Source: Macrostomum lignano
Lineage: Eukaryota
Direction of reading: 5' to 3'
Length of the DNA: 64,000 nucleotides
NCBI GenBank assembly: GCA_002269645.1
Contig: NIVC01000011.1
Coordinates: 1 to 64,000, forward strand
This document shows positions 618-46,246 of this stretch, in pieces; within the stretch, counting starts at the first letter, position 1, and each line of letters opens with the position of its first letter. A program made the translations under genes and the position numbers. The notes under the pieces are model-generated. The model searched no databases. It was not told the DNA's origin and was given only the letters and a program-made list of their open reading frames with translations.

Positions 618-3600
618 GCCATTCTTCAAAATACTGTTCAAAGCTCTCGAGAGTTTAGTGCTGGACGTGAAAAAGGACCAACAGTCTCCGTGTAGCATGC
701 TAAGCGAAATGCTACAATGAAGCATGTCTGGGGCTGGCTTCTCAATAAAAATTGTCCTGAAGACTTAAAATCCAGCGCCCGAGACAATTCTAAAGCTACG
801 ATCGAAGGAATTGTGGACTTGAATAACCATTCGTGACCAAAAATTTCAGTTTGAAAGAATTTCATGAACTGGAATGCGTTTTTGATCGCTTGGAAGGCGA
901 TGCATATGGCTTGCTTGATGACCTAATATGTGCTTTTGGTCGGAATGTTGATGTCAAGACAGCCGACTCAATCAAAAGAGCTAGAGGGACTGTAGATTCT
1001 TGGAATGCAAATCTAAACGAAGTGGAAATTTTGCTTCACTTCTTGTCCCAAATATCCGAGTCGAACAGTGGCCTGAACATCACGGTTATCGATGTCGAGC
1101 CCAGGAAAAGAAAGTTTGAAGAACTAAGAGACAATTGTGACGATAAACTATGTGCAATGGAAAAAGAAGCTCCTTTTACAAGGGTATTTTGTGTGAGATC
1201 AATAGAAAATATGGTGCGCGCAAAGACGCTTATACAGTCGTGTATTTTTAGAAGCACATTTCTAGAAGCCAATGCAGGCCTAAGCAGCGCAAAAGAAGCG
1301 CCACTCAAGCACATGTCTCTTAGCTGCACTGAAATTTTGGAGAAGCACTTGCCGCAGGCTGTGAAATCTTACGCAAAATTTTGGACATTGCTTTATCACC
1401 GTAATTCAAAGGTCGAGCAAATTGAAAGACACATTCAAGAGGGTGAAATTGACTTTGAATTAGAAATTCAAACTGCCGAGAAATTTTTAAGTACCAAAGT
1501 GGCCCACCATTGCGAAGCAAACTCGAGATACTTAGAAGTGTTAAAGAGAGATCTGGCTGGACAAGATGCCTTGAGACTCTGCACTTTTTTGCCCACAAAT
1601 TTCTCGAGAAAGACACCAGTACAAAACTGAATAAACGAACCGACGGCTGCGAGTTCTGCCGGACTGTGAGCAGACCGCAGAGGGACAAGGAAAGCAACGC
1701 AATGGTAATTTTTTTGCAACAGAAAGATCCCACACTTGGAGATTACATCGAACTGTTCTACAACGACCTTGCAACAATTAGAAATATCAATCCAAACATT
1801 TGGCGTATTCTGGAAAAATTGAAAGACTGCAAGGATGTTGTTCAATTTCTATATGAACAGAAAAATTCTGATCTACAGCAGCTGCTAGACAACACAGATG
1901 ACAGTGCAACTAATGACATGAGCCCGTCTGTAATAAATTCGCTTATTTCGCTACAGAACGCATTGAAACACTTTCTGCTGAATCTAACAAATCTCCCTTG
2001 TGCACGCAGTTTACTGGAGTCTTTGGAGCAGTCAATCACCTATCATAGCTCATCATCAGAAGAGCCGCGACTTGACTCGTGCGCTAAGACTCTCATCGAT
2101 CGCATTGATGAGTGTCAAAGCAACATAAATTCAATTAAAAAGCTGCACGCAAGTCTTGGATCTCGAGGAACTACGTCTAAAAAGCTTGCAAAAGAATTTG
2201 CGGAGCAGGTTGACACCGCCGAATTTGGAATTGAAATTGACGATTGTGGTAATGTGAAATGCTGGTTCGTACACTCTGACAACATGGACCTCACTCTAAC
2301 TGAATTGATCGAGCATCGGTCAAGAATACTTTTGTCGAAAAATACTCATCAAAATTCAGGTAATTCCAACCTAGAAAATGATGCTCTGCAAAGCTTTGTA
2401 ACTCTAATTGACTTGCTGGAGTCTGCCTTAGAAACTCTGCAAAGACTCGTACAATCGGGTCATCCGCTATTCGAAGAAGTCACGATCCGTAAAAAAACTA
2501 GCCAGCTAGCTGAATACGGTACTTTGCTAAACTCAACGGAAAGCTCTTGGGAGACCTTGCTTTCATCGCTGAGGGATGAACATCCAATTGCAAACTATGT
2601 TCTTGGTCCTAGCCTTGTGCAGTTGCTTCTGTATTTCTTCAGTCATCACGATATCCAGAGAGTGAAAAGCATTCTTTACTACATGAGAATTGATAAAAAT
2701 TCCATTCAATCAATCAGCTTAGGAAAGAATACGGAATACGACAGACTACGTGGCCTAGGTTCTCTAGACGACCAGAACGCATGTCTAACTGGAATGCTGA
2801 AACAAATGTTTTTAAAACTTGAGAAGATGAAAAAGATAAAACCGCGAAATTTAGAGCATCTCAGTAATTTAGGAAATAAAGATATGTGCATTCCAGCTGG
2901 GAAACTTGTGATCTACAAAATGCAACCCTCAGATAAGGATTTGCTCAATACATTTCTACATGTTTGCATTAGCAGCCAAAAAGAAGCGCCTTGGATCAGC
3001 GAAATTGTCTTCTGCTCTCAGCAAACAACTTCTGAGGAAGTTGTCCTTGCCGTCAAGAGGGCTCCCGAAATTCCAGAGAGGGCCATTTTCATTCTGGACG
3101 CGCAGAACCTAAAACAGAATGTGCTGTACGCCCTTGTTTCTGAACTCAGTGAACAGACATTTTGCAAAAACAAAGGACGCGTATCCATTTTTTGCCGCGC
3201 GGCAGATTCGCATCTTCTGTTTACTGCTTTTGGCAACTGTGTCGTTAAGCCTATAGCGCCTGCTAATGAAAAACTTAACCGATTGGTTAAAGAATGCTTC
3301 AATGACGTCTTCTTCTGCTCATCTGATCGACCATCTGTTGGAAAGTCGGAAAAAATCGTGGCGCATTTGTTTAGAAGCCAAGACCGACAAGTTCAAATCC
3401 ATGTTAGCGGATCCATCGACAAGGATGCACTGATCAAGAAACTTATCTCGATCGGGGCTATGGACAGCAGTGTAATCCACTTTGATATTGGAGTTATACA
3501 GAATCCAGAGTACTTAGAAGCTATTCTTTTTGAAATGTCCCTTTGCAACGCTATTTCTACGCCGCAATGCGTTGTTGCTTTTAGGCCGCGCAAAATTTAT

Positions 3601-6600
3601 CTGGAAATAGCGAATACTTCAAGTGACGAGCTCTTTGACGGATTTTCCATTTTCTCTCGACTTTCAGACTCCAAGTGCGCTTGGGAAAATGTGCAGAATA
3701 TTGTCGTATCCATCGAGCCAATGTCGCATATCCAAGTTGTGTGCAAGTACCTGAAGCTTGCCAACGAAAACAAAATAGATGTACTTGAAATAAGTCCGGT
3801 TGAGGTTATCACTCGACAGAAATGCGTTAAACTTCTGATTGACTTTTTCAGCAGACCTCTCGACGACGGAACAAAACCCATCGATTTCGTTTCGTTTCTA
3901 GGGCTTGAGATTTGCATTAGAATCCTCGGTGAGCAACTGAAAAGATTCACGTCAAGCCCTTACTTTAGTTTGAGAGGCATTCGTCTTATTGGAAAAACAG
4001 GAATGCGAAGCAAAATGGTAAATCTGATAATGCAATCCACGCTTCAACTGTCGCTCAAGTCTGTGTCTTCAATTAGGGCCCAGCAAACCGAGAGCCGAGA
4101 GCGCGGCAATGAACGGGAGAAATCTAGCTTAGCAGGACTGATCTGCTGGGAGCAGTTTGCATACGTATTTCCTGTCTTCATGAACCAGGACACATCAACT
4201 GTGGAGCTAATTTTCCAAAATCATTCCGATGTAAAGCCGGAAATTATGGAACTGTTTGAGAGTGCCTCGTCAAAACAGCTTGTTGAATTTAAGCACATGG
4301 CAGAGACTACTCTGCAAGAGAAGTTGGTAAGAATTGTGGCCGATTTACCGAGGGCTGGCACGCACGATACTCGTAGCATGCCTAAAAGCTATGTGTTGAC
4401 TGCGGACAACTTTTTGAAAATGATTCTAATTAATCTTCGCCTCGATGCCGATGTACCAGTGGTACTCATTGGAGAAACAGGATGCGGAAAAACCAGTCTC
4501 GTTCGCTATTTGGCTGCTGCTAAAAACTGCCAATTACGTGTGATGAACTTCCATGCTGGCATTACGGAAGCTGAAGTCAATGAGTTCATATCGAAGGCAG
4601 AAAAAGTGGCTTATAGTCTCACAAAACAGTTTGCTGAATCCTTAAACCGTGAAGGCACCGTTTTAGTGTTTTTAGATGAGGTAAACACTTGCGAGCATCT
4701 TGGATTACTCAAAGAAGTTGTCTGCCACAAGAAGCTTCAAAGTCGTCAGCTTCCCAGCAATCTGAGGTTTATTGTGGCTTGCAATCCGTACATCCTTCGA
4801 AAATGTACCGTCCAGTCGGCTGGATTTGAGATCAGAGAGCTCGACGATAAAATGGCAGGATTAGTGTATCGAGTAAACCCGCTGCCAGAATCTATGCTGG
4901 AATTAGTGTGGGACTTCGGCCGCCTGACTGAGAATGATGAGCTGGTTTATATTCGCAGAATGATAGGTGAACTATTCAGCAAAGCTTCAAAAGCTCAAAT
5001 CGACAACATAGTTGCTTCACTTTCAGAGGCACAGAAATTTATTCGGAGTCTAGATGACGTTGAGTTTACAGTCAGTTTGAGGGATATCCGGCGCTTTTGT
5101 GAATTTTTTAATTTTTTTACCAATTACTTTAGTCGAAAAGAGCTCATCGATAAAGCCAGCCAACAATCGTATGGCTCAACTCAACGCGCATGGCTTTTTG
5201 GCCTTTACATCTGCTATTACGTTAGACTCATGGATTCCACGATGCGAAAACGCTTTCTCAGCATTCTTGAGCAATATACGGAATTGACGACCAAAGAAAT
5301 GATTGAAATCTTTGAAAAGGAAGAGCTCGATTTACTCAACAGAATGACGATTCCAAGCAAGACAGCTAAGAATCTTGCTCTTCGAGAGAACGTCTTTGTT
5401 ATATTCAGCTGCATATATTGTCAGATTCCTGTTTTTCTTATCGGCAAGCCTGGTTGCTCAAAGTCACTGGCAATGAACATTGTGCGCAGCAATCTTAGAG
5501 GTGAAGATTCCGTCAATGAACTGTTCCGACAGTTCCCTCCATTGAGATTCTTTAGCTACCAGGGCTCCGAAACCAGCACTTCCGATGGCATCATCAAAGT
5601 GTTTAAAAAAGCAGAGAAAAGCAAAATGGAAGGCAAATCTAAGTTTAACCCCGTCGTGTTAATCGACGAAATTGGTTTAGCAGAAAAATCGAGATTCAAT
5701 CCGCTGAAGGTTCTGCATGGCTTACTGGAGCCGGAGTATTCTTTGAACTGTAGAAGCAAAGTATCCGTCGTCGGCGTATCAAACTGGGCTCTTGATCCAG
5801 CTAAAATGAACCGAGCTATTTATATATCACGCCCAGAAATGAATGAGGAAGAGCTATTCAGTACTGGACAGGCAATATGCTCAGAAAGCAGCAAAAAAAC
5901 TTTGAAATCCATTGACGATAAGGTCCTTAGAAAAATTGCCACCGCGTCGTATCGACACTTTAAAGACCAATCGCCAGAAAATTTTCACGGCTTGCGTGAC
6001 TATTATTATCTTCTAAAATATATCTGCGATAAAGTCCAAAATTCCAAGGCTGTTCCTGACGCCATACAAGAAGGCATATTGCGTAATTTCAATGGTCACT
6101 CGTTTTTGTTAAAATCTGTTCTGAAAGAATTCGCGGCCGTTTTCCCCGAGTGGAAATCGGTTAATAATCGATCTTCGAGTAAAACTGAGTCCAAAATGGA
6201 GCAGTTAATATCGCAAAATTTGTCGGATCCGAAAGCACGGCATTTGATGCTGGTGTGCGACGGTGAATTCTGCCTTGATCTGCTGTGCAAAATACTGCGT
6301 CGTTCAAAGAGAAACTTTAGAATAATCCATGGCAGCTTGTACGAAAGGGACCAGTTTTCCGATGAATTTTCTTGCAGAAAGCTCAACGAAGTAATGTCCT
6401 GCATGGAAGAGGGCACCACGCTGATCCTTAAAGATTTCGATTTGATTTATGGCAGCTTGTACGACATGCTCAATCAAAACTATTCCGAGTATGCTGGGCG
6501 CAAATATTGTCGAGTTGCGATGGGAATTCAGGCCAATCAGAATTGCGCCGTTCACGAGAATTTTAGATGCATTGTTCTGGTTGAGAAAGCCCGCGTGAGC

Positions 6601-9600
6601 CAGTTGGATCCACCTTTTCTGAACAGGTTTGAGAAACAGTTGCTTTGCTTTCAAGAGAAACTCAAATCTATGGATCTCATTGATGCTAAAGAAAAAATAG
6701 AAAATCTATTACAGAGCTTTTGTGTCGTAAGCACTCCATCTTTGTCATTGAAAGTCAAGCTGGTAGACACAATTCAAGGTTTTGATAAGCACCTTGTTCC
6801 TTCTTATCTGTTTGAAAGCTTACGTAATTCAAGCAGTCATCGCAGCAAAGCAGAGCGTGACATAATATACCTAATGTCCAAGCATATGTTTCCAGATGCT
6901 GTTCTTCGAGTGTCCTATACAGAACAAGGAGAAACCGCTCAGAATCAGGAGTTTCAGCAGCATTACTTTAGCCACTGCCTATTTAAAGACCTTGACGAAG
7001 CACTCAGAATGGCCATGAAAGAAGTATCTGAACCAGTAAAACGATTGTATATTTATACGCGGTTTTCGCTTTATCGATCGATTCAAAAGCTGCATGACTT
7101 TGAAAATTTTGAAGTCACTGAGCAACGACTAATTGATTTTCGCCAAGAAAGCGACCTTCTCGGCTCTCTAAAAACGTTTCTTAAAAGAGACAAAGAAGGC
7201 ATTCTTCTTATTAGAACAAAGCCTTCGCTCGATGCCCGTCATATTTTGCACGCACGATGTCTGATTGATGGTCTATGCGACGGTCACGATTTTCAAATTC
7301 GTTCTGAAAAGGTGATTGTATTTATTGTACACTTGCAGCAAGAGGACTTAGAAAGTGGCGTGTGCTCCTCGTGGAAATGGAACCCATTGATGTCCTCGTG
7401 GTCGTTGTACTGTGTGGAGGAACTAAATTCGAATGCTACATTAGACTTAAAGTCTTTAGTCGATTTAACTGATTCATCGAAGATTCTTGACCCGAATGAG
7501 ACCTTCTTGCAATTGGTTCACAGAGAAGCAGTGCCGAAGTCTCTGTCTGAAGCTTTGCGCAGTTCTGATTTGTACCAGAGAGTTTCAGATGCTCTTCGAG
7601 ATGATTCAAGTTTAAAATCCACATTGATAAGCTTTATTACTAACAAGTACATAAAACCAGCTCTTTCTGAGAAAAGTATATTCAGTCAGGAGAATTGGAT
7701 TAACAGACAGTCACTTGAAACAGTACAGCTGGCGAACTTTGCTTCCTTCTCAGACTTTGTCGTGCAAAAATTGAAGCAAAAGTACAGGTATAATCTTACT
7801 GAGATTCTAAAACTGATGGAGGAGTTCGGCCTCCTAGCTTTTATTGAGTCTCCAAGTGATATTACAATCAAAGCTTTACCGCTGGTACTCGAGAAAATCT
7901 TGTCAGATCCACACTTTGAAAGAATATCAAGAGTTCAGTGCATTCGGAAGCTGACTTATCCTATCAGTCCATTCCTGTTTGATTTCGCTTGCCAGATATT
8001 CCAAAATAAATCCGATGACAGGGAAAGTTTTCTAAAAGAATTCTCAAGTATACTCGGCAGGGTATTTACAACTGAAGCAATGTCCCCCGACAGTGATGTT
8101 TATAAAGACTTTATCTGCCTGCTCTCGTACCATTTCTGCTCTGTCGACCGAACCGACAGCCTTCTGAAGATAATGAGCAAGCAAATTGATCAGTGCAACA
8201 GTATAGACGAAGCAGTATTTACAATTTTTTCTGTTTCTCGTAAATACCAAGAAAGTTTTTCTGACCTGATTAACGTAAACCATCACGTGCAGACCATTGC
8301 AGCTGAGCAAGCGAGTGAGATAGCTCTGCAAGTTTCTTCAAGTATTCATGCTGACTTGGAATCCTCAGACGCCAGCAACGATTGCGTTTTGGAAGCTTTG
8401 AATTCCATGCTCTGTTTGTTGATACCAGAAAAAGCAACTTACTCACATTTGCAGATAACAAGCATTTCTGATTGGCTGCGTGTTACCACTAGCTGCCTCG
8501 GCACGCTCAGGTCAAGGACAAACAATGCTCTTAGCTGCGTCCCTCAACTAGAAGCGCTGTTCAGGTTCTTCAGCATGTTTGCTTGTTCAGAAAATGATAA
8601 AGCGATATGGCAGGAGATCGAAAGAAGCGAGATTGAACTTCCTGATGCAATGAATAAAAGTACGCCGGCGGAACTACTTCGTCTTTGGCGAGGTATCTCA
8701 ACTAGTGCACTGAGGAACTCTGGCGATGAGAATAAGGCATTTCTTTCAATGGAGGTGTCGTTTTACCACTCTCTTCTTTCAATGGAAAGTATTGACGAGG
8801 CCCTGTTAGAGGAAATAATTCGAAAGATTTCCAAAGGATGCCTGCCCATGTGCTTCGTTGCAATACCGTGGGAAAAGATGATCCAATCACGCAAAGATCT
8901 TCTGGAGCTGTTTGAAAATATTGTAGAATCTGCACCAAAGAAGACTATTAATGGAATTAAGTTCACCCTCCTCGAAAGCTTTCCAGACTCGCAAACAGAT
9001 GAAACCGCAAGAGATATTATTGACTTTATGGATGACATCAGTCCCAAAATTGACTGCTTAGCGAAAATGGATTTCGAAGAACTTATTGGCATGAAAGACA
9101 CGCTGAAATTGTTTCAATTGTCAGTTCAAAAATCGAGCCTACTTTTTAACGACTTCGATTGCTTTGGAGTAAACCAGGAAGAGATTTTGATACGATTGAA
9201 CAAATTGGCCAGGGCGAACTCGCGTCACCCAGTGTGGATCGCCTTTCTTCGCACCTTAAGAACGCGCTACACACTTGAGGAAGTTGAACGGATTTTGAAA
9301 TTCGACAGTGTAGTGTCAAATTTGAACTGCCTTAGAAGAGATTTGATTCTCAGTTTCGGCCAAGAAGCAGCATTTATCGCTAACTACTCTCTTCGATATC
9401 CATTCGTTGTGTGGATCGATGCAGATTTTTGCTGCAACGTGATAAATTGCCTAACCCGTGCTGTGGAAAATTCAGATAATCGAGGTGTCAGACAGCTTGT
9501 TCAAAATATTTCCGAAGAACGATCCGAAGCGCAGAGGTGTCTCAGGACGGCGGAATTCATGGGAGCTTATGTCGAACTTGTTGGGCTTTTAAGGACGAAT

Positions 9601-11532
9601 AGAAATCTTCGAAGCTCTGAGGTACAGTTAAAGAGAGCAATTGTGTACTACTTCGAAATAAATTTTCAAAGGAGTCAAATAATACAGCTACTGTGCGGAA
9701 ATCGTGACAGCTTGGTCCAATGCTTGAACTCAACTCCCCAATGCACTAGTGAAAATGTTTGCCTGATTACATTGTATCAGACATGCCTGCTTCAGCTGCT
9801 GGCTAGTAATGTCCCGTTCTGTGAAGGGAGTGTTATCGACAGAATTAACCGAATGCTACTGGAATGTGACGATGGATTCGAAAAGATATTTGACATTTGT
9901 GAGAATGAACGCAACGTGGCAATGGTACGACGTTGTTCATTGTGCAACTGCGTCTGTGTGTTTCAAAGCTGTCCCGACGATATTAGCTTGACGTATCCGT
10001 GCCAGTACTGTGACTCGGATTGGACCAGTGACCTGCGAGAGGAAATCATTGACCTGCCGAACAAATGTTTGACTCAAAATTTGCATTCGATACTCAAATT
10101 TTTGAGTTGCCTTTTTGCAACAGCCTTAATTGACTCTGAAAACCCAGGGTCCGTCAAGGCAGGAATAGCATCGTCCTTCAACTTGGAGAAGCAATTTGAC
10201 AGTTTGCGCAAATGTCTTAGTCTCTCGTGGGAAGAGACTACTTGGCTAATGCATGCCATCTTGACCGGAGAAAGTGACTCCGAGCGACCGTTTTTTAACC
10301 AATCACCGGAACTTCTATTGAAACTTGTTTCAACATACGTTATGCAAAGACGCGCTAGTGTTCAGAAGTTCAAACGGAAACGTCTGGATGAAAGAGCGAG
10401 CAAATTTGATGAGCAAAGCAAAAATTCATTTGCATATGCGCGTCTAATTGATTCTATTGATGAATCGGAATTCGGCGAGGAGACATCCACTCTACTGCCA
10501 CCGACAGGTGTAAACGAAGTAATGTTGCTATTTGATTGCGAAATTCTCTCTGCTCAGCCTGATCAGCAGCCCCACTGTCTAGGCTGGCGTCGGCTAGCCG
10601 GTTTATTGTTGGAAAATGCAACCGTCTTTGACCGAATGCTACATGCAAGTCATCTCATCCGTTATCATCAGCTGTTGATTGCTTCGCTTGACATAGTGCA
10701 CAGCGTCACAGTAAAGGAAATAATAAAAAATGTTGAGGAAAAGAGAAAACTGCTGAATGCTGCCCAAGCTGCATGGAACGTTCTCAGTTGTGATGGAAGT
10801 AATGCATTGTGTCCTTATACGATTGACCAACGAGCAAGTCTCGGCCTTTTAACAGAATCATCTGAGGCGCTGCGTCTTGTTCAAGCAGCTGTCAAAGACG
10901 TGAACCGTGTTCTAACGGCAGCCGCACTCCTTCGCCTTCGGGATGGTATCCCGGTAGAACTTGCGGTTAGCGATGGTGGCTTGCAAGTTGCTTGCATGAT
11001 GGGCGAGGCGAATGTCATTACCCGGCCAGACGACATCCCAGCGTGCTCCCAGGAGGAGCTGAACGATTTAACGCGTCTTGCTTGCCAGCGCGTGTCCCCA
11101 GCTTTCGATACCGAAACAGACTGGGACCTGCTGACTTCGTTGATATCGCGAAAACTTTTTGCAGCAGGACGAGCTCATTTCGGCCGGGCTGACCCATGGG
11201 TACCAACAATGGAGCCGTCAAGCGGGATAGAATCAGCATCATCTGGGTCTCTAGATGAAGCAACGATCGATGACCTCGTGACCAACTTTAAGGCTGTTGT
11301 AACACCAGCGCCATTGACTGAAGCCAATGTTGCCGAAGTCGAAAGAAACTGTCGCGAAGATGCCGGACACGCGTCGCGGGTGGTGGAGCTCTGCTGTACT
11401 GCCCTGCGATTTGTGCGACGTCGACTCGAGATTTCGGCAGGGGAATCAACTGAAAACCTCGGCCTTGCAGAATACCTCTCTTGTATTGGAGTCGTGGGCA
11501 CCGAAATTCTGGCAGATGTGAAGTTGAATCAG
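618..11532 (+). CDS. RNF213: Giant exon of an RNF213/mysterin-like AAA+ ATPase (ORFs 833..1630 and 1510..11553 plus upstream pieces, split by apparent -1 frame breaks)
   Basis: TTTTAG acceptor at 616-617 and CAG|GTGATT donor at 11533. Motifs match RNF213 in order: SDRPSVGKS (~3322-3348); VPVVLIGETGCGKT (Walker A 4471-4494); VFLDE (Walker B, DE at 4675-4680); IPVFLIGKPGCSKS (5443-5466); VVLIDEIGLAEKSRFNPLKVLHGLLE; GVSNWALDPAKMNRA; FHGLRDYY; YDMLNQNY; LNRFEKQ; and the post-RZ helix LRKCLSLSWEETTWLMHAIL. Confidence 0.93.
9934..10011 (+). other. Degenerate RZ-finger-like Cys cluster in the RNF213-like protein
   Basis: CSLCNCVCVFQSCPDDISLTYPCQYC lies at the RZ position, just before the conserved helix LHSILKFLSCLF...LSWEETTWLMHAIL. 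It lacks the His residues and GG of CPNGH..C...CxxC...GGxxH. Confidence 0.6.
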
Positions 11533-11696
11533 GTGATTTTTTATTTACTGTAACTTATAAGCATTTCATTAGTAATACACTTATGAGTTATAATCAATAA
11601 CACTTACTCGTATATGCCCCTATGTAATAATTCATTCATCCGATTTATAAAACTCGACTCTAGTCTGAATTTATTGGGCAAAACCTTGCTTATCAT

Positions 11697-11944
11697 CAGT
11701 GGCGGATCTAGAGTTTCATTTTGGGGGGGGGGTCCAAGTTTGGGGCGCCAACACGAGTGTAAGGGGCGCCAATCTTAAAGCTAGGGGGAGCAAAAAATGC
11801 GTGTTGGGGGCGAAAAATCAAGCTTAGGGGCGCAAAAAAGGCGTTTGGGGGCGAAAAATCAAATTTAGGTTAGGCTTTTGGGGGGTGCAATATGTTTGGT
11901 CAAGCTATTTTTGGGAGGGCGCCCCCCCCCTTAATCCGACCCTG
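11697..11944. mobile_element. hAT-type MITE (248 bp) in an RNF213-like intron
   Basis: 8-bp TSD CTTATCAT at 11689-11696 and 11945-11952. Imperfect TIRs CAGTGGCGGATCT / CAGGGTCGGATTA (rc). Confidence 0.85.
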
Positions 11945-11984
11945 CTTATCATCTAGGCTTAGAATGCGCCTAACAAAATAATCA

Positions 11985-12420
11985 GATCTTTGAGCTCTGC
12001 TCTAGAAACAATTTTTACGCTATTCTGTTCTTATCTGCTTCTGTTGGGGTCTTATTTCTCCGTTAGTTTAATTATAGAGCTAGCTTGTCCATTCACTAGT
12101 AGCTATAGGAGCTACATATAATAGATTAAGTACCAGTAGTGCCAGAAGAACCTGGTAGAATTTTCCTCTCTAATATATCGAGCACATATGTTCGAGAAAA
12201 TCCTGCACAATAGACAGTTGGTCCAACTGCATTTAGTCTCCTTGCACATTGTCTTCAGTTCTTGTTTGTGTCCACCTTACTATAGTTCGAGCCAGCATTT
12301 CTCAGCATGCAGGACTTGGGGAGTTGTTAGACCGTCTTTGAACCAGTACATCAAATGTATTGTATCGTACAAGTATAGGTCTATTGTAATATGTGTTCTA
12401 AAGGTGGCATTCTTATTTTA
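11985..12420 (-). mobile_element. Decayed dispersed repeat, probably a LINE (L1/Tx1-like) ORF2 relic; homologous to 35790-36210
   Basis: Colinear similarity to 35790-36210 (e.g. GCTTGTCCATT.ACTAGT, GAACC.TG..GAATTTT, GTGTCCA..TTACTA). The minus strand reads ARYIREENSTRFF, like the LINE RSR.xW..xGEKxTKFF motif. Confidence 0.45.
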
Positions 12421-12701
12421 ATCCCTCTTGAGAATAGTTCATTAAAAAAATCAATAACTAGGCCCAACGGGTGCGTATTCTTAATATGTATTCTGTTGAG
12501 TTTTGTTAACGTGCCCCCTATAGTTATTTCAATTTAAAGTTGTTCAGTTCTTGTACATAACTCATTCGACTGTAAAACGAGTATAACTTGTTATATTTAC
12601 ACGACGAATATAAAACATTGTTTGGAACAGCCCTAACAAGCAATTAGTTTATGAATAAATAAATCGAAGCCTTGAAAAATTGTTTTTTGTACAATTTTCA
12701 G

Positions 12702-13082
12702 ACACTGTCGCTTCTAGAGGAAGCTGAGCAGACTATTTTTGCCCAATCGCGAGTGAAAATTCGCGAGGCCCTAGTTAGCAACTCACCCAGCAGCTATAGT
12801 CCATTTGCTTCGAGCGACTCAAACGACAGTACAGCCGCGGTTAACAAAGCGCAACGTTTGCTAAACGGTCTGCCAGAAGATCAACTTCCGACTGTGCTGC
12901 GCAATCTTCGAAGTGCTTGCGTTCGTCGCCTTCTGCAAGGCGGATCGAGGCAACAAAAGCAAGGCAAGCCTCTGCATCTGCCGGCCCGTCTAAAACGGCT
13001 TGAGGCGGGTCCAACAAGTGAAGCCGGTGTGGAACTGTCAGACTTGGAGCTGTTTGAGCTGAGTGATTTGATGCATCAGCAG
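12702..13082 (+). CDS. RNF213: RNF213-like penultimate exon (C-terminal domain)
   Basis: TTTTCAG acceptor and CAGCAG|GTGAGT donor, 381 nt, phase 0-0. Spliced it reads ...VKLNQ|TLSLLEEAEQ..., resembling the RNF213 C-terminal L.H.IALW..L segment. Confidence 0.8.
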
Positions 13083-13182
13083 GTGAGTCTTGGTTTGTTT
13101 ACTGTTGATGATATCGCTTCCTGTTAAGTCTAGTTTACCCACTAATTTTCAAAAAAACGAATTAACTTATTTTTAATTTTAG

Positions 13183-13239
13183 GAAGCCGCCAAAACATCA
13201 CGAAAGAAGAAGTACAGCAAACTATTAAGTCGCTATTGA
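13183..13239 (+). CDS. RNF213: Probable terminal exon of the RNF213-like gene (EAAKTSRKKKYSKLLSRY*)
   Basis: TTTTTAATTTTAG acceptor after a 100-nt intron; the phase-0 reading ends at TGA 13237-13239. Confidence 0.5.
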   Translation, partial: EAAKTSRKKKYSKLLSRY

Positions 13240-22870: not shown

Positions 22871-24040
22871 TGTGACACTCAAAACTCAACCACACCAGTG
22901 TCAGTGATTCAAAACTCAACCACACCAGTGTCAGTGATTCAAAACTCAACCACAATCAGCTTCAGTGTGTGACACTCAAAACTCAACCACAATCAGCTTC
23001 AGTGTGTGACACTCAAAACTCAGCCACAAAAAGCCTTAGTGACACTCAAAACTCAACCACAATAAGCCTGAGTGACACTCAAAACTCAACCACAATCAGC
23101 TTCAGTGTGTGACACTCAAAACTCAACCACACCAGTGTCAGTGATTCAAAACTCAACCACAATCAGCTTCAGTGTGTGACACTCAAAACTCAGCCACAAT
23201 AAGTCTGAGTGACACTCAAAACTCAACCACAATAAGCCTGAGTGACACTCAAAACTGAACCACAATCAGCCTCAGTGTGATTCAAAACTCAACCACACCA
23301 GTGTCAGTGATTCAAAACTCAACCACAATCAGCTTCAGTGTGTGACACTCAAAACTCAACCACAATCAGCTTCAGTGTGTGACACTCAAAACTCAGCCAC
23401 AAAAAGCCTTAGTGACACTCAAAACTCAACCACAATAAGCCTGAGTGACACTCAAAACTCAACCACAATCAGCTTCAGTGTGTGACACTCAAAACTCAAC
23501 CACACCAGTGTCAGTGATTCAAAACTCAACCACAATCAGCTTCAGTGTGTGACACTCAAAACTCAGCCACAATAAGTCTGAGTGACACTCAAAACTCAAC
23601 CACAATAAGCCTGAGTGACACTCAAAACTCAACCACAATCAGCCTCAGTGTGATTCAAAACTCAACCACAATCAGCCTCAGTGTGTGACACTCAAAACTC
23701 AACCACAATCAGCCTCAGTGTGTGACACTCAAAACTCAACCGCAATCAGCCTCAGTGTGTAACACTCAAAACTTAACCACAATCAGCCTCAGTGTGTAAC
23801 ACTCAAAACTCAACCACAATCAGCCTCAGTGTGTGACACTCAAAACTCAACCACAATCAGCCTCAGTGTGTGACACTCAAAACTCAACCACAATCAGCCT
23901 CAGTGTGTGACACTCAAAACTCAACCACAATCAGCCTCAGTGTGACTCAAAACTGAACCACAATCAGCCTCAGTGTGATTCAAAACTCAACCACAATCAG
24001 CCTCAGTGTGATTCAAAACTCAACCACAATCAGCCTCAGT
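22871..24040. repeat. Minisatellite, 31-33-bp unit
   Basis: Unit GTGACACTCAAAACTCAACCACAATCAGCCTCAGTGT with variant blocks. Confidence 0.95.
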
Positions 24041-28059: not shown

Positions 28060-28790
28060 TAATTTGGGAGTTAAAGTGAAGGGTCAAATGGGAGTTGAAG
28101 TGAGGGGTCAAATGGGAGTTAAGGAGATGTGTCAAATGGGAGTTGAAGAGTGGGGTCAAATGGGAGTTGAAGAGTGGGGTCAAATGGGAGTTGAAGAGTG
28201 GGGTCAAATGAAAGTTGAAGAGTGGGGTCAAATGGGAGTTAGGGAGATGTGTCAAATGGGAGTTGAAGAGTGAGGTCAAATGGGAGTTAAGGAGATGTGT
28301 CAAATGGGAGTTGAAAAGTGGGGTCAAATGGGAGTTAGGGAGATGTGTCAAATGGGAGTTGAAGAGTGAGGTCAAATGGGAGTTAAGGAGATGTGTCAAA
28401 TGGGAGTTGAAGAGTGGGGTCAAATGGGAGTTAAGGAGATGTGTCAAATGGGAGTTGAAAAGTGGGGTCAAATGGGAGTTAAGGAGATGTGTCAAATGGG
28501 AGTTGAAGAGTGGGGTCAAATGGGAGTTAAGGAGATGTGTCAAATGGGAGTTGAAGTGAGGGGTCAAATGGGAGTTGAAGAGTGGGGTCAAATGGGAGTT
28601 TAAGTGAGGGGTCAAATGAGAGTTGAAGAGTGGGGTCAAATGGGAGTTTAAATGAGGGGTCAAATGGGAGTTAAGGGGATGTGTCAAATTGGAGTTGAAG
28701 TGAGGGGTCAAATGGGAGTTGAAGGAAGGAGTCAAGTGGGGTTTAACAGAGGGGTCAAATGTGAGTTGAAGAGAGTCAAATGAGAGTTAG
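28060..28790. repeat. Minisatellite, 24-bp unit
   Basis: TGGGAGTTGAAGAGTGGGGTCAAA and variants; explains the overlapping repetitive ORFs. Confidence 0.95.
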
Positions 28791-30122: not shown

Positions 30123-31637
30123 GAGGCGCGTCGCCACCGGGGAGACAGGGGGAACATGTCCCCCCCCAGTAAAAGCTTTCGGGGGGGACATGCCAATGCT
30201 TTGTCCCCCCCACCCCACTTTGTGACCCGTTATAGTAATCAAAAATGTTTCTTCAGGCGCCAAAATATAGCGCTTTCGGCGCCAAAATAAGTGCCTTCGG
30301 CGCCGAAATGAGTGCCTGCCGCGCCAAAATGAGTGCCTGTGGCGCCAAAATGAGTGCCATGAGTGCCTGCGGCGCTAAAATGAGTGCCTTCGGCGCCAAA
30401 ATGAGTGCCTGCGGCGCTAAAATGAGTGCCTGCGGCGCCAAAATGAGTGCCATGAGTGCCTGCGGCGCTAAAATGAGTGCCTTCGGCGCCAAAATGAGTG
30501 CCTGCCGCGCCAAAATGAGTGCCTGTGGCGCCAAAATAAGTGCCTTCGGCGCCAAAGTAAGTGCCTGCGGCGGTAAAATAAGTGCCTGCGGCGGTAAAAT
30601 AAGTGCCTGCGGCGCCAAAATGAGTGCCATGAGTGCCTGAGGCGCTAAAATAAGTGCCTTCGGCGCCAAAATGAGTGCCTGCCGCGCCAAAATGAGTGCC
30701 TGTGGCGCCAAAATGAATGCCATGAGTGCCTGCGGCGCTAAAATGAGTGCCTGCGGCGCCAAAATGAGTGCCATGAGTGCCTGCGGCGCTAAAATGAGTG
30801 CCTTCGGCGCCAAAATGAGTGCCTGCCGCGCCAAAATGAGTGCCTGTGGCGCCAAAATAAGTGCCTTCGGCGCCAAAGTAAGTGCCTGCGGCGGTAAAAT
30901 AAGTGCCTGCGGCGCCAAAGTAAGTGCCTGCGGCGGTAAAATAAGTGCCTGCGGCGGTAAAATAAGTGCCTGCGGCGCCAAAATGAGTGCCTGCGGCGCT
31001 AAAAGAGTGCTTGCGGCGCCAAAATGAGTGCCTGCGGCGCTAAAATGAGTGCCTGCGGCGCCAAAATGAATGCCATGAGTGCCTGCGGCGCTAAAATGAG
31101 TGCCTGCGGCGCCAAAATGAGTGCCATGAGTGCCTGCGGCGCTAAAATGAGTGCCTTCGGCGCCAAAATGAGTGCCTGCCGCGCCAAAATGAGTGCCTGT
31201 GGCGCCAAAATAAGTGCCTTCGGCGCCAAAGTAAGTGCCTGCGGCGGTAAAATAAGTGCCTGCGGCGCCAAAGTAAGTGCCTGCGGCGGTAAAATAAGTG
31301 CCTGCGGCGGTAAAATAAGTGCCTGCGGCGCCAAAATGAGTGCCTGCGGCGCTAAAAGAGTGCTTGCGGCGCCAAAATGAGTGCCTGCGGCGCTAAAATG
31401 AGTGCCTGCGGCGCCAAAATGAATGCCATGAGTGCCTGCGGCGCTAAAATGAGTGCCTGCGGCGCCAAAATGAATGCCATGAGTGCCTGCGGCGCTAAAA
31501 GGAGTGCCTGCGGCGCCAAAATGATTGGTGACACCACGATTCTCAAAATAATGGAAATGTAGGAATTTAGCCATGTATGTTGAATTCTTGGCTTTGTCCC
31601 CCCCCCCCCCTCAATAAAATCCATGGCGACGCCCCTG
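30123..31637 (+). mobile_element. hAT-like MITE with an internal 21-bp minisatellite expansion (~30255-31525)
   Basis: 8-bp TSD GCGCGATT at 30115-30122 and 31638-31645. TIRs GAGGCGCGTCGCCAC / CAGGGGCGTCGCCAT (rc). Unit TGAGTGCCTGCGGCGCCAAAA. Confidence 0.9.
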
Positions 31638-32800: not shown

Positions 32801-32815
32801 TTCAGTCAGTCAGTT
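32125..32815. repeat. (GTTA)n microsatellite
   Basis: Long, imperfect GTTA/GTCA array. Confidence 0.95.
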
Positions 32816-32858
32816 GGTGAGTCAGTTATTCTCATTTCACTCACTGATGCAATTGCAG

Positions 32859-33399
32859 GGATTCGAAGACCCAGACAGCCGACTCCAAGTGGCGGACCTG
32901 TACACCGACCTCCGAGACGGCACAAAACTTTTCTGTTTAGTTTGCTACCTGACCGCTAATCCCATACCGGAAGCTGGTCGGGTAGCTTCATCAACCGAAT
33001 CAGATGCTCGCCGCCTAATCGAGCGCAGCAAACAGCTGGTGCAGGATAATTTCCGAGTCGATCTGAGTAGGCTGGACACTGACCAGGTGGTGCAGGGCAG
33101 GCCGAAGGCTACTCTAGGCCTGGTGTGGACTGTGCTGCAAGCTTGGTACAGCGACGACTCTGAGAGCTCCCTATTGGAGTGGTGCCAAGAGCGCTGCAGA
33201 GGCTACGCTGGGGTGCACATCGCCAACCTGACTGTCAGCTGGAAGGATGGACTCGGATTTCTAGCCATCCTGCACTCGGCACGGTCCCATCTGCTTGCAT
33301 TCAATGAGCGATTGAAGAAGCCGCCTGCGGATAACTTGGCTTTGGCTTTTCATTTGGCTAAAACTGAGTTCGGGGTGCCCACTCTGCTGGATGTTGATG
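32859..33399 (+). CDS. DMD: Dystrophin exon, CH1-CH2 actin-binding domain
   Basis: VADLYTDLRDGTKL, KATLGLVWTVL, LLEWCQ, IANLTVSWKDGLGFLAILH, DNLALAFHLAKTEFGVPTLLD. 541 nt, phase 0-1, GATG|GTGAGT donor. Confidence 0.92.
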
Positions 33400-33554
33400 G
33401 TGAGTGTGCCAAGAATCTTAGGATTGTACAAGTAGGATTACACTTGAACATAAAAGTTCATCGCACGGGTCTTGACCTTGACCGCTTGACCTTAAATATC
33501 CTCCAATGAATAGTTGCTAGGCTATTTATCTCAAAGATCTAAGCTCTGGTGTAA

Positions 33555-34234: not shown

Positions 34235-34269
34235 GTAAGTCTTGTACTTTTTGACTGTCCGTGACCATT

Positions 34270-35344
34270 GTCTGTTTATCTGTTTATTTGTCTGCCTGTC
34301 TGTCTGCCCGTCTGTCTGTCTTTCTCTCTGTCCGTCTGTCTTTTTGTCTGTCTGTCTTTTTGTCTGTCTGTCTGTCTGTCTTTTTGACTGTCTGTCTGTC
34401 TGTCTTTTTGTCTGTCTGTCTTTTTGTCTGTCTGTCTTTCTGTCTGCCTGTCTGTCTGTCTTTTTGTCTGTCTGACTGTCTGTCTGTGTCTGTCTGTCTG
34501 ACTGTCTGTCTGTGTCTGTCTGTCTGACTGTCTGTCTGTCTGTCTTTTTGTCTGTCTGTCTTTCTGTCTTTTTGTCTGTCTGTCTGTCTGTCTGTCTGCC
34601 TGCCTATCTGACTGCCTGTCTATCTGTCTGTCTGTCTTTTTGTCTGTCTGACTGTCTGTCTGTGTCTGTCTGTCTGTGTCTGTCTGTCTGACTGTCTGTC
34701 TGTGTCTGTCTGTCTGTGTCTGTCTGTCTGACTGTCTGTCTGTGTCTGTCTGTCTGTGTCTGTCTGTCTGACTGTCTGTCTGTGTCTGTCTGTCTGACTG
34801 TCTGTCTGTCTGTCTGTCTGTCTTTTTGTCTGTCTGACTGTCTGTCTGTGTCTGTCTGTCTGTGTCTGTCTGTCTGACTGTCTGTCTGTGTCTGTCTGTC
34901 TGTGTCTGTCTGTCTGACTGTCTGTCTGTGTCTGTCTGTCTGACTGTCTGTCTGTGTCTGTCTGTCTGTGTCTGTCTGTCTGACTGTCTGTCTGTCTGTC
35001 TGTCTGTCTTTTTGTCTGTCTGACTGTCTGTCTGTGTCTGTCTGTCTGTGTCTGTCTGTCTGACTGTCTGTCTGTGTCTGTCTGTCTGTGTCTGTCTGTC
35101 TGACTGTCTGTCTGTGTCTGTCTGTCTGTGTCTGTCTGTCTGACTGTCTGTCTGTGTCTGTCTGTCTGACTGTCTGTCTGTCTGTCTGTCTGTCTTTTTG
35201 TCTGTCTGACTGTCTGTCTGTGTCTGTCTGTCTGTGTCTGTCTGTCTGACTGTCTGTCTGTGTCTGTCTGTCTGACTGTCTGTCTGTGTCTGTCTGTCTG
35301 ACTGTCTGTCTGTCTGTCTTTTTGTCTGTCTGTCTTTCTGTCTT

Positions 35345-35383
<39 letters not shown>

Positions 35384-35462
35384 GCCTGCCTATCTGACTG
35401 CCTGTCTATCTGTCTGTCTGTCTGTCTGTCCGTCTGTCTGTCCGTCTGTCTGTCCGTCTGTC
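34270..35462. repeat. (TCTG)n microsatellite
   Basis: 1.2-kb imperfect TCTG array; explains the QTDR/SVCL ORFs. Confidence 0.95.
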
Positions 35463-35789
35463 TTAATGTCTGTCTTTCCTTCTCAGTGTCTCCCTGTCTT
35501 CTTATGGTTATGCCAGATTTTAAATGCATTTGTACCTGCCATTATGCAGTATCTAATAAATACAACTCGTATCGTTGTCTGTTTCTCGCTATACACGAAT
35601 ACCTGAAGAAGAGATAACGAAAAACTTGTTTTTTTTGCCTCCACTTCCTGTCATGCATATTTTCTATTGTTGGAAGTGGCCTCAGCAATTTTTTGGACTA
35701 GAAGAACTCTCCATTCTAGCCGGAATTAATTGGGAAAACCTTTTCAATTGTTTAAATCTAGGCTTAAAGGACAACACGCTGAATAGTTA

Positions 35790-36210: not shown

Positions 36211-36499
36211 GCGATTGGTTCAAACGTGATTTATTATGTATGTTATAAGGTGACACTTGTTAACACTTGTGAATAAGAGCTTGGTGGAGCCCCTGAGCGG
36301 TAGCGGTCGATGCTAGTTCTCGGAATACATGCACTTTAGCGATGGGCAGATTGGATGATATTGCTATGATATTTGTTCTCTTCCTCTGTCGTCATTTCTT
36401 TCTATCCTCTTTGTCTTTTCTTTTTTGACCTCCGTGTCTCCGCTCTCTTCCCCTTTTCGCTCTCTTCCTCCCTGGATCCGCTCTCTACCTACCTATCTC

Positions 36500-37230
36500 C
36501 GCTTTCTCCCTCCCTCTCCCGCTCTCTCCCTCTCCGCTCTCTCCCTCTCCGCTCTCCGCTCTCTCCCTCTCCGCTCTCTCCCTCTCCGCTCTCTCCCTCT
36601 CCGCTCTCTCTCTCTCCGTTCTCTTTTCCGCTCTCTCCCTCTCCGTTCTCTCCCTCTCCGCTCTCTTTTCCGCTCTCTCCCTCTCCGCTCTCTCCCTCTC
36701 CGCTCTCTCCCTCTCCGCTCTCTCCCTCTCCGCTCTCTCCCTCTCCGCTCTCTTTCCCTCTCCGCTCTCTCCCTCTCCGCTCTCTTTTCCGCTCTCTCCC
36801 TCTCCGCTCTCTCCCTCTTCGCTCTCTTTCCCTCTCCGCTCTCTCCCTCTTCACTCTCTCCCTCTCCGCTCTCTCCCTCTCTGCTCTCTCCCTCTCCGCT
36901 CTCTTTCCCTCTCCGCTCTCTCCCTCTCCGCTCTCTTTCCCTCTCCGCTCTCTCCCTCTCCGCTCTCTTTCCCTCTCCGCTCTCTCCCTCTCCGCTCTCT
37001 TTTCCGCTCTCTCCCTCTCCGCTCTCTCCCTCTTCGCTCTCTTTCCCTCTCTGCTCTCTCCCTCTCCGCTCTCTCCCTCTTCGCTCTCTCCCTCTTCACT
37101 CTCTCCCTCTCCGCTCTCTCCCTCTCTGCTCTCTCCCTCTCCGCTCTCTTTCCCGCTCTCTCCCTCTCCGCTCTCTTTCCCGCTCTCTCCCCCTCCGCTC
37201 TCTTTCCCGCTCTCTCCCTCTCTTCCATGT
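36500..37230. repeat. Pyrimidine-rich minisatellite, 15-bp unit
   Basis: CTCTCTCCCTCTCCG repeats. Confidence 0.95.
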
Positions 37231-41319: not shown

Positions 41320-42790
41320 TAGTCCCTTCGTAGGTTGTGCAACCCCTGCAGATTTTTTGTAGGATGTGCAACACCATACAATCCTTTTGTAGGATATAAA
41401 ACACCATACAATCCTTTTATAGAATGTACAACACCACACAATCCTTTTATAGAATGTACAACACCATACAATCCATTCGTAGCATGTGCAACACCATACA
41501 ATCCATTCGTAGGATGTGCAACACCATACAATCCATTCGTAGCATGTACAACACCATACAATCCTTTTGTAGGATATAAAACACCATACAATCCTTTTAT
41601 AGAATGTACAACACCACACAATCCTTTTATAGAATGTACAACACCATACAATCCATTCGTAGCATGTGCAACACCATACAATCCATTCGTAGGATGTGCA
41701 ACACCATACAATCCATTCGTAGCATGTACAACACCATACAATCCTTTTGTAGGATGTGCAACACCATACAATCCTTTTGTAGGATATACAACACCATACA
41801 ATCCTTTTGTAGGATATACAACACCATGCAATCCTTTTGTAGGATATACAACACCATGTAATCCTTTTGTAGGATATACAACACCATACAATCCATTCGT
41901 AGGATATACAACACCATGCAATCCTTTTGTAGGATATACAACACCATACAATCCATTCGTAGGATGTGCAACACCATACAATCCATACGTAGGATGTGCA
42001 ACACCATACAATCCATTCGTAGCATGTACAACACCATACAATCCATTCGTAGGATATACAACACCATACAATCCATTCGTAGCATGTGCAACACCATACA
42101 ATCCATTCGTAGGATGTGCAACACCATACAATCCATTCGTAGCATGTACAACACCATACAATCCATTCGTAGCATGTACAACACCATACAATCCTTTTGT
42201 AGGATATACAACACCATACAATCCATTCGTAGCATGTACAACACCATACAATCCATTCGTAGGATATACAACACCATACAATCCATTCGTAGCATGTGCA
42301 ACACCATACAATCCATTCGTAGGATGTGCAACACCATACAATCCTTTTGTAGGATATACGACACCATACAATCCTTTTGTAGGATATACGACACCATACA
42401 ATCCTTTTGTAGGATATACGACACCATACAATCCATTCGTAGCATGTGCAACACCATACAATCCATTCGTAGGATGTGCAACACCATACAATCCATTCGT
42501 AGGATGTGCAACACCATACAATCCTTTTGTAGGATATACGACACCATACAATCCTTTTGTAGGATATACGACACCATACAATCCTTTTGTAGGATGTACA
42601 ACACCATACAATCCATTCGTAGGATATACAACACCATACAATCCATTCGTAGGATGTACAACACCATACAATCCATTCGTAGGATATACAACACCATACA
42701 ATCCATTCGTAGCATGTGCAACACCATACAATCCGTTCGAAGCATGTGCAACACCATACAATCCTTTCTTAAGATGTGAAACACCGTAAA
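41320..42790. repeat. Minisatellite, 30-bp unit
   Basis: ACACCATACAATCCATTCGTAGGATGTGCA with variants. Unit length is a multiple of 3, which explains the long ORFs on both strands. Confidence 0.95.
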
Positions 42791-42976
42791 ATATTTTCGT
42801 AGGATTTGCTATCCCACAGGTCTTTCAATACACTTTGGTATACTCAGCAGCAGGGTAGCTTAATCTCTTCTGTATCATCTCTGTCTTCTTATCTGTAGTC
42901 TTTGATTTTCAATATTCGTCTGCTTAATACATATTCACGCATACTAATTTGTCTTTTTTTTCTTTTCTTTAAACAG

Positions 42977-43795
42977 CAACAGCAACAGCAACAATTGCCA
43001 CTATTGCGCGACTATCAACACTCGCTGGAGCGTTGCCTCGAATGGCTATTCGACGCCGAAGATCTTGTCGCCTCGGCTGCTGACGAGCAAGACGACGACA
43101 ACGACGACGTTGTTGACAACGACGAACTGAACTCGAATCAGCAGCAGCCAGCTGATAGGGTAGCGGAGCCCGTGTCCGAATCCGAGTTGAGCACAGTTCG
43201 CGAAGCTCGCCGGCAGTATCGCGATCACGAAGCAATTGCAGATCAGCTGACTGAGAATCAGGAGGACGTCAGGTGCGTCTTGGAACTGGCTGATGCACTG
43301 CTCACCTCCGGAGAGCTGAGCGGTCCGGCTAGGAAAGAGATTCAGTCGCAGGTGCAGCTGCTCCAGACCCGATGGGACGCGCTCAGACAAGCTGCTGTTG
43401 CTAAAGAGGCTCGACTAAGAAAGCGTCTGGCCGCGCTTCAAGAGCGGGATATTCGACGGCTAAGCAGATTTCTGCACTGGGCTGAGGGCCGCATCGAGCA
43501 GGAGACCGTGGGCGGCGTCGGTCCATTTGTAGAAGACATCAAGCGGCAGTTGAGATCGCATCGCGAGTTTCAAGACTACTTGGAGATGCAGGAAGCTCTG
43601 GTAGCGTCAGTGCAGGACGCTCTGGTATTGGACGCCGATGCTAACGGCGAGAGTGGAACGGAAACCCGAATCGAAGGCCTGGCTGCTAGATGGACAGACA
43701 CCATGGCTTATAATTCTGAGCGATTCTCAGATCTGCAATCGGCCTTGCTGGCTTGGAGACAATTTGAAGAGGATGAAAGCTTGCTTAGAGATGTG
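42977..43795 (+). CDS. DMD: Dystrophin exon, spectrin repeats 1-2
   Basis: LRDYQHSLERCLEWLFDAED (cf. LDRYQTALEEVLSWLLSAED), IQSQVQLLQTRWDALR. 819 nt, phase 0-0. Confidence 0.92.
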
Positions 43796-46120: not shown

Positions 46121-46246
46121 GTCAGTCAGTGTCAGGCAGCTGTTGTATTTTTAGCTGTAGATCTATGAAAAATCCCTCTAAGAGATGAGGGGGTTAGTCG
46201 GAGCCGCTGTGCACCTTGTGTGAGCGTGTGTATGTATGAGTGCCTA

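Follow-up and report, generated by a model that had tools for sequence, protein, structure and literature searches.

Among known ubiquitin ligases, RNF213 alone combines a dynein-like AAA ring with an RZ-finger active site, and the interdependence of its motor and its ligase is a question on which the gene described here, together with its relatives, bears. The gene lies in a stretch of 64,000 nucleotides (nt) from the flatworm Macrostomum lignano (assembly GCA_002269645.1, contig NIVC01000011.1, positions 1 to 64,000 of the forward strand), referred to throughout as the window. As predicted from its translation, the window holds the coding sequence for the C-terminal ~3,700 residues of a giant AAA+ protein of the RNF213 family; the gene is a divergent addition to an established family and does not define a new system. 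The reading that we favor, with moderate confidence, is that of an ATP-driven RNF213-like protein that is RING-less, carries the relic of an RZ finger and would have weakened or lost its ligase chemistry.

In human RNF213, the zinc ligands of the RZ finger are C4505, H4509, C4525 and C4528, the nucleophile is C4516 and the general base is H4537 (PMC11549300), with the mouse equivalents of these residues given in PMC12075652. Much like mammalian RNF213 (PDB entries 6tax, 7oik and 8s24), the window protein has a dynein-like AAA core of ~900 residues (about 31-35% identity), active Walker A and B motifs in AAA3 and AAA4, a P-loop in AAA2 and, where the RZ finger would be, a putative zinc finger with an apparently homologous C-terminal domain after it. 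Unlike mammalian RNF213, it has no RING, and its finger carries Cys at the position of the ligand His and lacks both the G-E-C-G loop and the GG-x-x-His general base. The region that corresponds to the E3 module, amino acids (aa) ~2270-2800, is not alignable to canonical RNF213, and the N-terminal arm, with any CBM20 domain, falls outside the window. What the window finger would share with the RZ fingers of ZNFX1 and RNF213 (Pfam PF20173) is a single-zinc architecture with two knuckles ~18 residues apart and a Cys in the loop between them (PMC11549300, PMC12075652), whereas the Y-x-C-P-N-G-H or Y-x-C-x-C-G start, the G-[ED]-C-G loop and the I-G-G-x-x-H tail of that family are all missing from it.

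The AAA+ motor core

The window contains 3347 codons without a break in a single open reading frame (ORF 1510..11553, + strand), a length that is not due to chance in DNA of ~42% G+C. A search with the whole ORF recovered 66 family homologs; homologs from this and other searches are referred to below, where they need to be told apart, by labels of the form P0001. In a phmmer search against PDB sequences, aa 957-1839 (4378..7026, +) matched mouse and human RNF213 with an E-value of 1e-117 (6tay, 7oik, 8s24 and others), and the protein had no other PDB match. Pfam reported AAA-type ATPase domains only (AAA_5, AAA and AAA_7), around aa 983-1062. The segment aa 1707-2253 also aligns to the RNF213 family, with a probability (Prob) of 99.5%.

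The nucleotide-binding motifs of the core are preserved. The AAA3 cassette (4471..4680, +) comprises a Walker A motif, GETGCGKT (aa 988-995, 4471-4494), and a Walker B motif, VFLDE (4666-4680), which pair with GETGCGKT and LFFDE of mouse RNF213 in the phmmer alignment. The AAA4 cassette (5443..5670, +) likewise consists of GKPGCSKS (aa 1312-1319, 5443-5466) and VLIDE (5656-5670), paired with mouse GKPGSSKS and VVVLDE. N-terminal to both, the sequence SVGKS (aa 609-613, 3334..3348, +) lies on a family-wide G-x-GK[ST] column that is kept in 21 aligned homologs, fish rnf213-alpha included, and is therefore the Walker A of the AAA unit preceding AAA3, that is, of AAA2. An earlier note on this DNA, made from its letters alone, had proposed a giant AAA+ protein of the RNF213 family with an intact motor, citing both cassettes and SVGKS. 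The family assignment is borne out by the phmmer match and the aligned Walker motifs, and the intact motor holds at the level of sequence motifs, each at the position named there. Judged from these motifs, the RNF213-like protein would bind and hydrolyze ATP as RNF213 does.

The cysteine cluster at the RZ position

The finger that we read as a relic of the RZ finger spans aa 2809-2834 (9934..10011, +). Its motif, CSLCNCVCVFQSC-x9-CQYC, reads C-SL-C-N-C-V-C-VFQS-C-PDDISLTYP-C-QY-C and is the sole Cys-rich stretch of the protein. Such a density is unlikely by chance, since of 2000 shuffles of the protein, 8 gave a 26-residue stretch with 7 or more Cys. The first knuckle consists of C2809 and C2812 and the second of C2831 and C2834 (C-x2-C ... 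x18 ... C-x2-C), and C2814 and C2816 are additional Cys within the cluster. In both hhalign and MAFFT alignments, the four knuckle residues fall on the columns of human C4505, H4509, C4525 and C4528. Cys2821 falls on the nucleophile column (human C4516) in three alignment approaches. It lies 8 residues past the second ligand, which is the family spacing, while 9 residues separate it from the C-x2-C where the family has 8. C2834 is followed by DSDWTSDLREE, with no Gly-Gly and no His, so that the I-G-G-x-x-His tail (human H4537) is absent. The earlier description of a Cys cluster at the RZ position that lacks both His and GG is thus accurate.

The same framework is found in the paralogs from M. 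lignano. The window protein reads R-R-C-S-L-C-x16-Y-P-C-Q-Y-C-D-S-D-W at the finger, P0072 reads R-T-C-S-C-x16-Y-P-C-Q-F-C-Q-S-E-W, and P0067, P0069 and P0070 read R-H-C-T-C-x18-Y-H-C-A-F-C-E-S. The four knuckle Cys and the loop length are therefore common to all of them at a background identity of ~27%. The paralogs differ from the window protein in having C-x-C rather than C-x2-C as the first knuckle and Asn rather than Cys on the nucleophile column.

Profile-profile comparison places the finger on the RZ columns of the family. Against a profile of the nearest subfamily (P0003, P0004, Mytilus P0015, Physcomitrium and three Rhizophagus proteins), a local hhalign alignment spans the finger (Prob 97%, E 1.1e-10), and the global alignment (Prob 98.8%, E 9e-16) pairs its knuckles with the family knuckles. 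When the flatworm clade is set against 20 RZ-bearing relatives, the post-finger domain aligns with Prob 88% and an E-value of 3e-6, and the global alignment lays the finger on the RZ finger (Prob 95.8%, E 3e-9). This C-terminal domain region (10180..11358, +), homologous to the post-RZ region of RZ-bearing members, is colinear with the finger. An unsupervised MAFFT alignment of 29 finger segments settled on the same register as hhalign. Profile-profile and MAFFT alignments thus agree with the original placement of the cluster at the RZ columns, and the analysis brought to light neither a cryptic RING, nor a complete RZ finger with a His, nor a misaligned cluster.

Several observations weigh against the reading as a relic RZ finger. 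At E<=10, Pfam PF20173 matches neither the window finger nor the M. lignano fingers, the control in this search, P0008 of the C-x-C type, scoring an E-value of 2e-15. RZ hidden Markov models (HMMs) built from 13 canonical and from 41 diverse fingers gave no significant match in the window protein, and nothing significant in the six-frame translations either; the 41-finger model located the correct position in P0072 (E about 0.1-0.2) and drew a single envelope, aa 2786-2834, on the window protein. The finger-only sub-alignment from hhalign is weak (E 0.027), being at the same time colinear and on the RZ columns. As the finger alone has no recognizable RZ match, its homology rests on colinearity and matching spacing. 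The assignment of zinc ligands is ambiguous, with four Cys in the N-terminal knuckle, and with C2812 and C2814 as the knuckle, C2821 would stand two residues off the nucleophile position. Additionally, the conservation of Cys2821 could be judged from the M. lignano paralogs only. An AlphaFold2 model of the 82-residue finger reached a mean confidence (predicted local distance difference test, pLDDT) of 61, with short strands flanking the knuckles; the model was built from 27 aligned fingers, RZ fingers included, and is thereby biased by the alignment. Foldseek of this model against the PDB returned nothing below E 0.2; RNF213 was not among the matches, the best of which, all weak, were to MCM N-terminal domains and ribosomal proteins.

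For the wider region, an AlphaFold2 model of aa 2150-3341 from four sequences has a pLDDT of 37.5, a profile of the flatworm C-terminal region gave no RNF213 match among PDB sequences, and no alignment partner was found for aa ~2270-2570. With respect to RZ identity, the AlphaFold2 and Foldseek results are best treated as uninformative.

One possible hypothesis is that the Cys cluster is an unrelated, lineage-specific zinc knuckle, and that the true RZ finger has been deleted, as in Rhizophagus P0007 and P0009 and in Mytilus P0015. Such an origin would agree with the failure of every profile to recognize the cluster by itself and with the occurrence of complete RZ loss in the same subfamily, and C-x2-C ... 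C-x2-C motifs are common. We consider it very improbable, however, because the one local alignment with Prob 97% pairs both knuckles with those of P0003, P0004, P0005 and P0006, because the x18 loop fits the x17 of the family, and because degenerate intermediates exist in the nearest outgroups, namely P0003 (C-x2-C ... Ser ... C-x2-C) and P0004. A relic of the RZ finger is the reading carried forward below.

RING absence and subfamily placement

No RING was found in the window protein by Pfam at E<=1. A C3HC4/C3H2C3 regular expression likewise matched nothing in the spliced protein and nothing in the six-frame translation of the 64-kb window; as positive controls, it recovered the RINGs of the beaver, quail, tilapia, Oscarella and Haliotis homologs. 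No RING insertion site could be placed in the window protein, as hhalign around a possible 'LW...FFMELVS'-like anchor gave nothing significant (E 0.07-0.14). Together with the two small 3' exons, which were also free of a RING, these searches bear out the absence of a RING that had been noticed earlier. Aligned across the family, the RING stands out as a separate insert, which vertebrates, a tunicate, Haliotis, Oscarella and the amoeba Willaertia have and which Capitella, Stylophora, Rotaria, Rhizophagus, Physcomitrium and many environmental sequences lack. In these sequences, absence of the RING is the common state outside vertebrates.

A hidden RING was hinted at by the UniProt names of several M. 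lignano fragments. P0068, P0070 and P0071 (UniRef A0A1I8GWW4, A0A1I8GKW9 and A0A1I8G7Z0) are named 'RING-type domain-containing protein' or 'RING-type E3 ubiquitin transferase listerin'. Scans of P0068, P0070 and the cluster-mates P0069 and P0072 with Pfam gave no RING, and this candidate was rejected; the names look like automatic over-annotation.

Neighbor joining on the AAA3-4 core supports the canonical metazoan clade with 100% bootstrap and the group of the window protein with the M. lignano proteins equally with 100%, and the flatworm clade joins P0003, P0004, Mytilus, Physcomitrium and Rhizophagus at 93%. The gene therefore stands outside the canonical metazoan RNF213 clade and is not an ortholog of canonical RNF213. 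BLAST alignments to members of its subfamily reach through AAA1-AAA2, whereas those to canonical RNF213 cover AAA3-5 only. No sampled member of this subfamily (the flatworm clade, P0003, P0004, Mytilus, Physcomitrium and Rhizophagus) has a RING, and in a separate subfamily of this kind the absence of a RING is the normal state. The gene had been taken for an invertebrate paralog; the tree makes it not a canonical RNF213 that shed its RING but a member of a separate, RING-less subfamily.

The subfamily members Rhizophagus clarus P0005 and Physcomitrium patens P0006, both RING-less, align to the window protein over q35-1853. The second zinc ligand is a Cys in Rhizophagus (C-x-C) and in the moss (H-x-C), as it is in the window protein. 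The two proteins keep V-G-E-C-G/T ... C-x2-C-G-x-x-I-G-G-S-S-H/Y and pass the Pfam RZ threshold, whereas the window protein does neither.

RZ fingers across the family fall into four states. The canonical clade has C-P-N-G-H ... G-E-C-G ... C-x2-C ... G-G-x-x-H. A second state, with C-x-C and an otherwise complete finger, occurs in fungi, a moss and protist-like sequences. A third is degenerate and lacks the nucleophile Cys (P0003, with Ser; P0010; and Oscarella P0029, which has a RING), and the fourth is complete loss (Rhizophagus P0007 and P0009, P0014 and Mytilus P0015). Cys at the position of the ligand His (C-x-C versus C-x3-H) is the common state in fungal, plant and protist members and is recognized by the Pfam RZ model, and in the subfamily of the window protein an all-Cys ligand set is the rule, so that the all-Cys zinc site that the earlier note had suggested as new is not new.

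Some individual members deserve mention in their own right. Read by eye from the alignment, the environmental sequence P0003 appears to have a Ser at the nucleophile position. Oscarella lobularis P0029 keeps its RING and has 'NSSSA' in place of G-E-C-G. A third Rhizophagus paralog has a complete RZ finger, while P0007 and P0009 have none. Willaertia magna P0040, from a heterolobosean amoeba, has a RING-like insertion as well as an RZ finger of the canonical C-P-N-N-H type and falls with the metazoan RNF213 clade at 95% bootstrap, which suggests that the RING-plus-RZ architecture either predates animals or was transferred. We found no description in the literature of such RNF213 variants in flatworms or other invertebrates.

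Implications for ligase activity

Under the favored reading, the finger would hold a single zinc ion and serve as a structural zinc ribbon. Transthiolation from E2 to E3 would be lost in the M. lignano paralogs, whose nucleophile column carries Asn, and would be at best weakened in the window copy, where Cys2821 has no His partner. In that case the protein would work chiefly as an ATP-driven scaffold or remodeler. The earlier suggestion of a lost or rewired ligase is sustained as far as the zinc-ligand His and the GG-x-x-His tail are concerned, both of which are missing; the loss itself is putative, and Cys2821 occupies the nucleophile column. In mouse RNF213, the His-to-Ala mutant of the general base keeps reduced activity and the Cys-to-Ser mutant of the nucleophile still autoubiquitylates (PMC12075652). 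For the window protein, residual ligase activity via Cys2821 is possible though unlikely.

Alternatively, the finger could be a working, rewired RZ active site, in which case the protein would be a RING-less and His-less transthiolating E3 driven by the AAA core. Cys2821 would take ubiquitin or a ubiquitin-like protein from the E2, with the base supplied by another residue or by the substrate. We regard such a site as possible though doubtful. The G-E-C-G loop and the I-G-G tail of all recognized RZ fingers are absent, and there is no Pfam RZ match. Both M. lignano paralog groups have Asn here, so that the only relatives known do not share the Cys, and with three Cys in a 16-residue loop, one of them could fall on the nucleophile column by chance. 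These points have to be set against the position of Cys2821 on that column in hhalign and MAFFT, the fitting spacing on either side of it (8 residues from ligand 2 to the Cys, and 9 versus 8 before C-x2-C), the activity that the mouse His-to-Ala and Cys-to-Ser mutants retain, and the several Pfam-recognized RZ members that also lack the His (for example IGGSSY and IGGEKG). In its most specific form, Cys2821 would be the nucleophile of an all-Cys, His-less and GG-less RZ finger in an ATP-gated transthiolating E3, a catalytic arrangement not yet described, which we hold to be quite unlikely. If it were true, the Asn-bearing M. lignano paralogs would be catalytically dead, and a single lineage would hold an enzyme/pseudoenzyme pair.

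In this gene and its relatives outside vertebrates, the motor is strongly constrained, the RING is usually absent and the RZ finger decays repeatedly, being intact in the moss and in one Rhizophagus protein, carrying Ser or Asn at the nucleophile position elsewhere, and being deleted in the mussel and in two Rhizophagus proteins. The combination of a kept motor with recurrent RZ decay argues for a ligase-independent function of the AAA scaffold, an idea for which the RZ-decayed relatives are natural 'catalytic-dead' variants. The protein may have a role in cell-autonomous defense, by analogy with RNF213 only, and a pathogen- or lipid-sensor role, which had also been raised, is one that we could only infer by analogy.

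Relatives in M. lignano and rates of evolution

The best relatives of the window protein are M. lignano proteins, at 47-49% identity. When 1.84 billion representatives were scanned by HMMER with the C-terminal 1198 aa, only two clusters were found, both from M. lignano, and this part of the protein is extremely divergent. Word-indexed searches, whether with the C-terminal 1507 aa or with an alignment of four C-terminal sequences, were empty and missed even the M. lignano proteins that HMMER found, which is a limit of the index rather than evidence of absence. The M. lignano set consists of PAA90242.1 (P0067) with P0069 and P0070, of a cluster of P0068, P0071 and P0072, and of BOX15_Mlig008706g1 (P0001). 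These proteins resemble the window protein in architecture, in a four-Cys finger with equal loop length and in a similar C-terminal end, and differ from it in sequence, being 33-49% identical overall and 23-30% identical in the C-terminal half. Identity to the full-length P0070 is 50-53% in the AAA core but falls to 23-30% in the final 1,500 residues. This C-terminal part changes at about twice the rate of the motor, and the putative ligase half is either under relaxed constraint or evolving rapidly.

The locus of P0001 (L001 23746-25591, NIVC01001505.1) shows an irregularity in this half. The counterpart of window aa ~2123 is joined in frame to that of aa ~3200, so that ~1,076 residues, the finger included, are missing. 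The jump is followed by a (TGTC)n microsatellite, translated as 'CLSV' repeats. The gap is either a real internal deletion in the paralog or a collapsed assembly.

Gene structure

The ORF list and translation, homology to M. lignano proteins and splice sites read directly define a giant coding exon (850..11532, +) of the RNF213-like gene. The exon is probably opened by the 3' splice site ...tttcag at 849 and ends at the 5' splice site CAG/GT (11532/11533), ahead of the in-frame stop. In frame 2, nt 833-1465 match aa 973-1207 of M. lignano P0001 (E 1e-23), and in frame 1, the main frame, the match to M. lignano runs from nt 1516 on. A single frame change (1497..1506, +) therefore separates two segments that are contiguous in the M. 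lignano homolog, whose ORF runs through, and no space for an intron exists between them. Two small exons follow, both in phase with the giant exon. The penultimate exon (12702..13082, +; 127 aa) is bounded by the splice sites ...ttttcag/ACA and CAG/gtgagt; its sequence 'LLEEAEQTIFAQ...LRSACVRRLL' is similar to 'LLEAAEQEQFSVIFA...LKSACVRLLM' of M. lignano. The last exon (13183..13239, +; splice site ...ttttag/GAA) encodes 18 aa and a TGA stop (13237-13239) and contains no RING, and its 'KKKYSKLLSRY'-stop is similar to the M. lignano ends 'QRKFQKLLNRM'-stop and 'QKYSKILRRMGR'. Of the gene limits proposed in the earlier note, the end at 13239 is correct, being the stop codon of the last exon, and the start at 1510 is wrong, as homologous coding sequence extends from ~850 in another frame.

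M. lignano P0001 has ~970 further N-terminal residues. A search of nt 1-849 with the M. lignano N-terminal sequence found no upstream exons, and on this comparison the N-terminal arm must be located upstream, outside the window. At the very start of the window, positions 1-20 read aaatttcag/TCAAG/gtgagt and resemble an acceptor, a 5-nt micro-exon and a donor; the resemblance may be accidental, or it may reflect further introns and exons of the RNF213-like gene on its upstream side.

The frame change is either an assembly indel or a disabling mutation, and it might make the gene copy nonfunctional, which also weighs against the favored reading. Taken further, the window copy could be a recently disabled or decaying gene, truncated by the frame change near 1500 and with its C-terminal half under relaxed constraint. 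With 3347 codons free of stops after the frame change and ~216 before it, a state not sustainable in an old pseudogene, and with all Walker motifs and both downstream splice junctions intact, we think decay improbable. A one-base assembly error accounts for the frame change equally well. The case for decay consists of that one frame change between segments contiguous in M. lignano, of the low identity to P0070 in the C-terminal half (23-30%, versus about 50% in the motor) and of the M. lignano locus that is without ~1,076 residues there, from which the region appears dispensable or unstable. The preferred account continues to be that of a gene for an ATP-driven, RING-less protein with a relic RZ finger.

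Other features of the window

A second, multi-exon gene lies at 32814-58330 (+), with introns rich in tandem repeats. It encodes a calponin-homology domain at 32814-33506 (Pfam CH, E 2.5e-19) and spectrin repeats at 42902-43879 (E 9e-13) and, weakly, at 45482-46165; its product is nesprin-, dystrophin- or spectraplakin-like. Dense mini- and microsatellites occupy 22872-24040, 28065-28789, 30256-31524, 34269-35475, 36496-37222, 41359-42805, 53291-54476 and 60123-61219. Their units include 37-bp, 24-bp and 21/42-bp repeats, (TGTC)n, a 15-bp CT-rich unit, a 30-bp unit in 48 copies and others, and the satellites yield long spurious ORFs in several frames on both strands.

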